A stretch of DNA of 64,000 nt, from NCBI GenBank assembly GCA_964188305.1, contig OZ076886.1. One strand, written 5' to 3'. The notes beneath the pieces are model-generated. The model did no database searches. It saw only the letters and a list, made by a program, of their open reading frames with translations, and was not told where the DNA came from. This DNA is from Podarcis bocagei (taxonomy: Eukaryota). The stretch's first letter is position 1. Each line of letters starts with the position of its first letter. Of the stretch, positions 40,001 to 43,000 are shown in pieces. The translations under genes were made by a program, and so were the position numbers.

Positions 40001-43000
40001 AGCTTTAGTTGGCGCATGGGGGTAGAACAGAGGGAGAATGTTCCGTTGTGCAAGCTGATGTCCTTGCTCTGACAGAACCTTAGCTTTAATGCTATGCTGA
40101 ATACAACCTTCAGAATGTTACATAAATATGCACCCAAAGGACACTGCCATTTTCGAAAGCTTAATCTCTGTAAGGGTGATTACTTCGTATATACGATTAC
40201 TTCATGGACTTGCTTGCTCTGAATCCAAGCAAAGAGCGCATGAAACAAGTTTCACATACTTGGCTTGTATTCATGGTCATTTCATGGAAGTCACAGAATG
40301 ACAACAACAGCTTGTGGAGTGTAAAAGAAATGGAAGGTGCTGTCCAATACATACCAGCTGAGAGATGTGGAACAATATTTTAGCAAAGGTGGTGTTTCAG
40401 GAAAAGTGATATAGAACAAGTTCTTGCAACACACTTAACAGCAGTCTTTAGAACTCATGCATGTAAGTGGAGATTGCTGCATGTATCTCCATTTCAAGAG
40501 AACACCCATGCATCATCTTGCATGTGTGAATTGAGGTGGGAGATCACCAAATGAATATTCAGCAGTGTATCTATTTAAATTGATCCTCACTAAGCAATGA
40601 CTGACATGCTATCTAAGGCAGCAGAGCCATGTTGTTTGCATACTTTGGTGTTCAGTGTCCACTTCCATGTCATCAATTCCCTTCAAATAGATTGCAGCTT
40701 GAAACAGTGGGTTTCACCTTATATTTCTTTGAAAAACCCGTTTAAAATTCCTGAATTACAAGGCTGACCCCCTACTATCTTCCCTGAGAAAAAAAGTAGT
40801 CTGTACCGGACAGATAGAGAAAGTGCAGTGTCCATGCTCTGGAGAATTTTAGATCCTATTGAAAAATGCGGATAAAAACTACCCAGAGCAGGCACACCTC
40901 ATTCACATCCACAGCACAACCATCCATAACTGCTGCATTCATGGTCACCAAGCATAAAAGCATACCAGAACAAGTGGCAGACAGGTAAGTACAGACACTG
41001 AACTTGGCATTCACAAATATATTCACAATACATGCAGTCACACATGCACACATTCTTGCAATCACATAAGCACACTCCATATACACACACTGATGAGTAT
41101 CAAACTTGCTCCAATCCTCATGAACATCTATCAGTCTGTAAAAGTACGAACACACCTCTGTGCATTCAGATACTGGCATTCATACATTCATATCCTTTCT
41201 AAGCACAAACCACCAACATCTGATGCACACTCATACCTGCAGTCACCTACAGGTATCCTCAAGATATACCTATTCAGGCTCACAATTTATGAACAGCATG
41301 TACATAGATAAGCATAGACACAGATGAGTATGGCAGCCTTCCTCAACCTGATGCCTTCCAGATGGTCTGGACTATAAATCCCATAAGCACCAGCAAAATG
41401 GTCAGGGATAATGGGAATTGTAATTCAACATCTGGAGGGCACCAGGATGAGGAAAACTGACATAAGGTACTGGCACGTCTGTCTAACTAATGAGCATTGT
41501 GACGGTAATCCAGAAAGTCTTTGTAAGATTAGGTATGGGGACATAGCTAGTAAGGATCCAATCAAAAGGTAGGGCAGGAATGAATGCAGGGGGCAATATG
41601 GGTCTTGCCTAGATTGTCTCACATCAGTGCTTCTGAGACTAGCTTGGGTGAGATCATGTGTCTGAAACAGATGAAAGGAGGAAGCACTAGCTAGCAGGAA
41701 GCAGTAACTCTAGGCAAGTAGTCAGTGACAAAATCTGAAAGATGTGGGGGAACTATCAGGGAATACAGATGTCACTCTAATAAGAGTCAGAGTTTATTGA
41801 GTCCAAAAACTGCTCCTTGGTTGTGCTGTTAAAGGGGCACAGCCTTGGCTCAGTCAAAATAGAGACAGAACAGAGAAAGATAAATAAGGTTCCAAAGCAA
41901 GAACTCTTTATGCTGGAACAGAGAATAGCTTGGACTATAACCAAACAATTTATTTCAATGGGTTTAGGTACACCTAATTCTGCACAAGATTGGGGTTTTC
42001 ACCCAAGGTACAGCAAGGAAAGGATGAGGAATGATGAATCCACACACATACGGCCTCGAAGAACTCACTACTACAGAGTCACACTCAGTAACACAATCAC
42101 ATGGACACACACACACACACTTGCAGGAACCCATGCACAGACCTCACACACGAGAGCAGGAGAGTTGCAAGTGTCTGGCAACTTCCTCTCTTGACCAGGA
42201 CATACCAAAGCCAAGAGACATTATGGCAGGCACTCACTTGGATTTGTTCTCCTCATAGTGAGCACTGGTCTTAATGTATCTGGCCAGCTCTATCTGCATA
42301 TCGCCGAATAAAGGAACCACCTGCAGCTGCTGGAAGAAAAAACAAAAGATGGTTTAAATAAGGCAGAGAGGCTCCCTTGGGTCTGAGAGAGCAATACAAG
42401 AGATTGGGGGAGAAAGGGGTACTTAACCGCCAGAGATGAATAAAGTTCTGGAACAGTCTTCCTAATAACTTTTGGATCAGCGAAGAGCCTTATTGAGTAA
42501 TGAATTGCATACATGAGTTTTTTCATTGACTCAAACCAGATTCACACAGTAAAATCACCATGACTCTTGACAGTCACTTTTGCGTGGTGATCATTTCTTC
42601 TGAAGATGTCACCTACATAGTGAGATGTTACTATATCCTGGGGAGCATTCAGTACCCCAGTAAATATTCAGAACTCACTAAATGGGAGCATATGACAGCT
42701 GGCAATGAATCAAATTACTCATCAAAAAATCAGTATGAAAATTCAGCCTTAAGATGCTTTGCCCAAACAGACACAGCAAAAAACAACAACACATAGTACG
42801 GTAGCAGCAATGTTCTACAAGAGAAAGGGTATCACCATGCTTTGACCGTTTTAACAGGAAGTGTCTCTTTAACCCAGTACTTTCTGTTGTTCTTCCTGTG
42901 ATGTTAACAACTGTAGTCTGGAATACATTTCTTCCCTAATATTTTGTTTGCAATTTCTTCTCTCTTCTTCCGGTACAAAGCTCGGTTTACGCTAACTGTA

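Follow-up and report, generated by a model that had tools for sequence, protein, structure and literature searches.

The K/E site of CYFIP2 is an ADAR2 substrate formed between exon and intron in mammals and birds, for which Levanon 2005 is one reference. In human and mouse, ADAR2 is the main enzyme that recodes lysine 320 to glutamate (K320E; PMC3391646). The recoding has also been recorded in rat, cow, and opossum (PMC4053846 supplement), and in chicken it takes place mainly in brain and increases with age (PMC4449034, Fresard 2015). The original prediction for the DNA analysed here had described the position as an ADAR2-dependent recoding site of the brain in mammals and birds. In ray-finned fish and Xenopus the glutamate is reported to be genomically encoded (PMC4449034; bioRxiv 10.1101/2025.03.04.641430). 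The mouse Cyfip2 site lies at position -35 from the 5' splice site and its editing-complementary sequence (ECS) in the adjacent intron, about 10 to 20 nt in (PMC5291252, Licht et al. 2016).

Editing and splicing of this exon are linked. Weaker splicing leads to more Cyfip2 editing in minigenes, as does a splicing inhibitor in primary neurons (PMC5291252), and Cyfip2 is spliced less efficiently in Adarb1-/- mice (PMC10984384). For the mouse minigenes, it was necessary to remove a cryptic donor at +128 (PMC5291252), and a conserved editing inducer element of 116 nt, predicted to form a 47-bp stem, has been described 138 nt 3' of the mammalian site (PMC5654063, Daniel 2017).

Here we describe the corresponding locus of the lizard Podarcis bocagei in a window of 64,000 nucleotides (contig OZ076886.1), in which the gene runs on the minus strand. 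The feature is, with high probability, the orthologous copy of the known CYFIP2 K320E ADAR2 substrate. The RNA structure is real and under strong constraint, yet such an orthologue was to be expected, and its link to splicing is likewise known and not new: the coupling that the original prediction had proposed was already established for mouse Cyfip2 by the two studies cited above.

Host gene and comparison loci

The coding region of a CYFIP gene lies whole within the window, from a start at about 53866 to a stop near 3898, and the Pfam FragX_IP matches fall on its exons. Comparison loci were obtained by scanning metagenome contigs with a degenerate DNA pattern made from the exon peptide, which gave three host-derived contigs. 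Two of them, L001 and L002, are near-identical CYFIP2 loci of an amniote with GC-rich introns and come from two metagenomes; the third, L003, is a CYFIP1 paralogue (..KSR, donor gtaagg) from the metagenome of L002. A human origin of the three contigs was considered and rejected, as the 5' part of the exon and the ECS differ from the mammalian primer sequences (PMC5291252) and equal those of the window. Beyond the window, the comparison thus covers two independent lineages only, one of them in the form of a 20-nt mouse primer. The JGI metagenome that holds both L003 (Ga0065711_1030582) and L002 (Ga0065711_1001215), on contigs of 32 kb and 61 kb, contains both CYFIP paralogues of its amniote host. 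Sequencing runs are available for the species of the window (DNA-like) and for several congeners about 1.4% divergent, with raw RNA-seq for one congener.

Exon 11 of the window gene is identical to residues 332-370 of human CYFIP1 (PDB 3P8C chain A) at 33 of 39 positions, with paralogue-specific residues differing, against 38 of 39 for exon 11 of L003, and the C-terminal exon likewise departs from CYFIP1. This divergence, together with the match of intron 10 to a mouse Cyfip2 intron primer described below, identifies the gene by sequence as the CYFIP2 paralogue and not CYFIP1. Since exon 11 aligns to residues 332-370, the lysine of ..YIKTS.. is residue 320. Its codon lies in the preceding exon, which Licht 2016 (PMC5291252) counts as exon 9; we call it exon 10, following the original prediction and a 2025 preprint. 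The exon follows an acceptor ..ttccag at 42330, intron 10 opens with GTGAGT at 42237 (GT at 42237-42236), and the first A of the codon, A42272, is at position -35 from the donor (exon end 42238). The coordinates of all features are collected in the table.

Features of the CYFIP2 K/E site in the Podarcis bocagei window (intron positions count from the first base of intron 10)
Feature	Position	Strand	Remarks
CYFIP2 K/E exon	42329-42238	minus	92 nt; 30 codons and a split AA/G codon
Lys-320 codon AAG	42272-42270	minus	A-to-I editing expected at the first A (42272; plus-strand T)
Outer helix, exonic 5' arm	42284-42272	minus	A42272 is the last pair, partner intron +15
Outer helix, intronic 3' arm (ECS)	42223-42210	minus	intron +15 to +28
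Inner helix, exonic arm	42265-42257	minus	9 bp
Inner helix, donor arm	42238-42230	minus	last exon base and intron +1 to +8, includes GUGAGU
Perfect intron block	42237-42208	minus	intron +1 to +30; 30/30 against L001 and L002; ends with the hairpin
Candidate extension helix	42208-42200 with exon 42301-42293	minus	intron +30 to +38; weak, GU-rich, tentative
Second conserved intronic island	42147-42124	minus	intron +91 to +114; donor-like GTGAGG; 22/24 identical to L001 and L002

Two side observations concern the same gene. The K/E exon starts at a tandem acceptor, cagCAG (NAGNAG; 42327-42332, minus strand), which L001 and L002 share unchanged and whose second AG, if used, would remove one Gln. 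A CYFIP2 intron contains an Rfam tRNA match (26427-26484, minus strand) that covers the model only from 8 to 63, scores 33.6 bits, and probably represents a fragment of a SINE derived from a tRNA.

The predicted exon-intron hairpin

The original prediction had paired exonic 42284-42258 with intronic 42237-42210, and refolding of the 75 nt from 42284 to 42210 gives that structure at -24.3 kcal/mol (z = -3.2; 2 of 200 shuffles fold as well). The overall duplex is imperfect and comprises about 25 bp between the last 47 nt of the exon and the first 28 nt of the intron; its outer helix contains a single bulge and a 1x1 mismatch, an internal loop separates the two helices, and the terminal loop measures 18-20 nt. 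The donor GUGAGU is indeed held in the inner helix, as had been claimed, although that helix has 9 bp on refolding and not 8. The placement of A42272 at the edge of the outer helix also holds: it forms the last outer pair, an A-U pair with a 5' U neighbour, beside the internal loop and an A:A mismatch. The most efficient editing sites typically have an A:C mismatch, and A42272 is instead in an A-U pair. Rfam searches found no family at the hairpin site. The candidate extension helix is predicted alike in the window and in the species of L001, and its sequence is not conserved.

In wider contexts the hairpin is largely retained. The probability of the A42272:+15 pair in the partition function is 0.56, 0.84, and 0.89 in contexts of 152, 300, and 600 nt, and the donor positions -3 to +6 have a mean unpaired probability of 0.12 across all contexts folded in silico. 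The exception is the minimum free energy structure of a 341-nt context, which is a different, long-range fold, although in the centroid of the same context the inner helix is intact and the outer helix is partly preserved.

The long-range pairs of the 341-nt structure are one reason to consider that the real duplex may be larger or different, with the exon pairing with the island at +91 or with other conserved blocks of intron 10 and the local hairpin being only a folding intermediate. The intron does hold further conserved blocks, and mammals have the predicted 116-nt inducer stem downstream of the site (PMC5654063). The +91 island lies 126-149 nt 3' of the site in the window and may be related to either the cryptic donor or the inducer element of mammals. 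However, folds of the window and of L001 around this island gave no inducer-like stem that was either significant or shared by the two, the local A42272:+15 pair dominates the 152-600-nt ensembles (with a probability of up to 0.93 in L001), and the mammalian inducer is described as an addition to the stem of site and ECS, not as its replacement (PMC5654063). We therefore regard a larger or different duplex as improbable, and the local hairpin as the probable substrate.

Conservation of exon, donor, and intronic arm

The window and L001 are near-identical from about 33 nt before the acceptor (42330-42362, the end of intron 9; three mismatches) through the exon to intron position +30, beyond which the identity collapses. 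The original prediction had called for conservation of intron positions +7 to +28, and these fall within the perfect block, which ends where the hairpin ends. Over +8 to +30 all 23 positions of intron 10 are identical to L001, against 4 of 23 and 6 of 23 in the control introns 11 and 12; the neighbouring introns are not conserved past +7. The whole of intron 10 (5,389 nt in the window, 2,851 nt in L001) can be aligned only over +1 to +125 and in two short inner blocks, so that exon arm, donor, and intronic arm are all frozen and the remaining intron has diverged beyond alignment. The two inner blocks lie at about 40824-40897 and 39198-39259 (minus strand), with 75-77% identity over 65-77 nt.

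Within the exon, 89 of the 90 bases of the 30 complete codons are identical to L001, as are both bases of the split codon. Third codon positions agree at 29 of 30 in exon 10 and at 57 of 78 in exons 11 and 12 together (Fisher p = 0.004). Frozen third positions, along with an intron block that matches the 3' arm, argue for selection on the RNA sequence of exon and arm. The CYFIP1 paralogue L003 is a natural negative control for the hairpin: across the 30 complete codons of the exon its peptide is the same, yet only 16 of the 30 third positions are identical and the start of its intron is unrelated; the corresponding 75 nt reach no more than -7.2 kcal/mol on folding and leave the equivalent A unpaired.

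No covariation was seen, every core pair being invariant in the sequences obtained, which is uninformative either way on pairing; because of this invariance the support for the pairing is conservation and not compensatory change. The lack of compensatory changes would also fit a fold that arose by chance, with the exon kept for the protein, the donor region kept for splicing, and a pairing without function. Among all 75-nt stretches of the minus strand in the window, 3.8% fold at -24.3 kcal/mol or below, and the stability of the hairpin by itself is not beyond chance. What is beyond chance is that it coincides with a block of conserved intron sequence with sharp limits, and that its geometry is the one published for mouse. 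Against a chance fold there are the excess identity of intron 10 over its control introns, the suppressed synonymous change of the exon, the paralogue that encodes the same peptide without the fold, and the match of the arm to the mouse intron, and we judge this explanation very unlikely indeed, close to negligible.

The match to mouse comes from the nested reverse primer used for Cyfip2 pre-mRNA (PMC5291252), which, reverse-complemented, aligns to intron positions +14 to +33 of the window. It is identical at +15 to +24 and at +26 to +29, that is, at 14 of 16 positions over +14 to +29 and 13 of 14 over +15 to +28. The two differences within the arm are at +14, the base opposite the A:A mismatch, and at +25, which belongs to a pair of neighbouring U with one bulged, where a shift of the bulge can preserve the pairing. 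This pattern lends modest, independent support to the fold. The identification of the intronic arm as the ECS, made in the original prediction, is strengthened by the -35 position of the site, by the location and sequence of the arm, both of which match mouse, and by the invariance of the arm in a distant amniote.

The conservation extends beyond the core hairpin. At the synonymous sites of the 5' half of the exon (42293-42329), the window and L001 differ by no more than one GAG/GAA change, and the last 33 nt or so of intron 9 are nearly invariant; the core hairpin does not account for either. The conserved sequence before the acceptor is among the observations that would suit a different function of the block, namely a splicing control element (the donor together with an enhancer or silencer in the intron, perhaps with a stem that masks the donor) in a lineage where editing is lost or negligible, and so are the burial of the donor in a helix and the donor-like second island. 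Such an element would leave several facts aside: the conserved block ends exactly where the partner arm of the edited codon does, the exonic arm has kept its synonymous sites unchanged, geometry and sequence equal those of the experimentally defined mouse substrate (PMC5291252), and mammals and birds, which bracket the squamates, both edit. A purely splicing role is in our view rather unlikely, and we retain the reading as an editing substrate.

Predicted editing, the predicted donor helix, and known systems

Given the mammal and bird bracketing and the perfectly conserved substrate, substantial editing at 42272 is predicted to occur, quite probably, in the brain of Podarcis bocagei. As soon as both are transcribed, the last 47 nt of the exon would pair with the first 28 nt of the intron, and ADAR2 would most likely deaminate A42272 in neurons, so that the codon AAG would be read as glutamate (GAG). 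Since the intron supplies one of the two arms, editing would have to precede intron removal, and its level would depend on a race between editing and splicing, as has been demonstrated in mouse.

The position of the donor inside the inner helix suggests a further step. The fold probably slows recognition by U1 and would thereby extend the time available for editing; the calculated energies are -11.0 kcal/mol for the exon:donor duplex, -10.0 kcal/mol for the inner hairpin, and -6.8 kcal/mol for the bare U1 5' end on the donor, and on these values it is plausible that the helix competes with U1 for the donor. Replacement of A by G at the site, as a proxy for inosine, leaves the energy of the fold unchanged (-24.6 versus -24.3 kcal/mol). 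The idea that editing itself frees the donor by opening the hairpin is thus unsupported, and ADAR2-promoted splicing, if any, would more likely act through binding or remodelling than through loss of a base pair.

More tentatively, the inner helix could be a selected device for delaying splicing, which withholds U1 until ADAR2 binds or edits the outer helix, so that the hairpin sets the K/E ratio. If true, this would explain the lower Cyfip2 splicing efficiency of Adarb1-/- mice. In the accounts of Cyfip2 consulted we found neither an explicit donor-holding inner helix or a test of U1 competition nor a dissection of the inner helix by disrupting and compensatory mutations, and the mouse experiments that link editing to splicing do not address this helix separately (PMC5291252, PMC10984384). 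The possible delay function of the inner helix, which is kept unchanged between the window and the amniote of L001 and L002, is the residual novelty of the locus.

Few recoding sites are common to mammals and birds, and for one of them the locus provides a further example from sauropsids. Since glutamate is reported to be genomic in ray-finned fish and Xenopus, the amniote lysine and its hairpin look as though they go back to one ancient switch towards a regulated mixture of K and E. The locus also provides a clean positive control, in which intron conservation that ends exactly at the predicted end of a helix marks a real RNA structure.

Four known systems can be set beside it. Donor-masking stem-loops, such as that of MAPT exon 10, regulate the access of U1. 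The two are alike in that the 5' splice site is paired, here in silico in a stable local stem (inner helix, -10 to -11 kcal/mol) whose predicted stability is at least equal or comparable to that of the U1:donor duplex. To our knowledge, no alternative splicing affects the CYFIP2 K/E exon, unlike exons of the MAPT exon 10 type, and the effect on U1 is one that we infer. The resemblance to editing inducer elements consists in a conserved element 3' of the site, and the difference in that neither the window nor L001 has a significant or shared long stem there. The GRIA2 R/G hairpin (exon 13 and intron 13) is likewise a short local hairpin of exon end and intron start with the 5' splice site inside, and slower splicing raises its editing level (PMC5291252); its edited A is at position -2 beside the donor, whereas in CYFIP2 the A is at -35 and the donor is in a separate inner helix. 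The closest system is the mammalian and avian CYFIP2 K/E substrate itself, from which the lizard copy, known from its sequence and predicted fold, differs only in species: it shares the gene, the codon, the distance of -35, and an arm of near-identical sequence within the first 30 nt or so of the intron.
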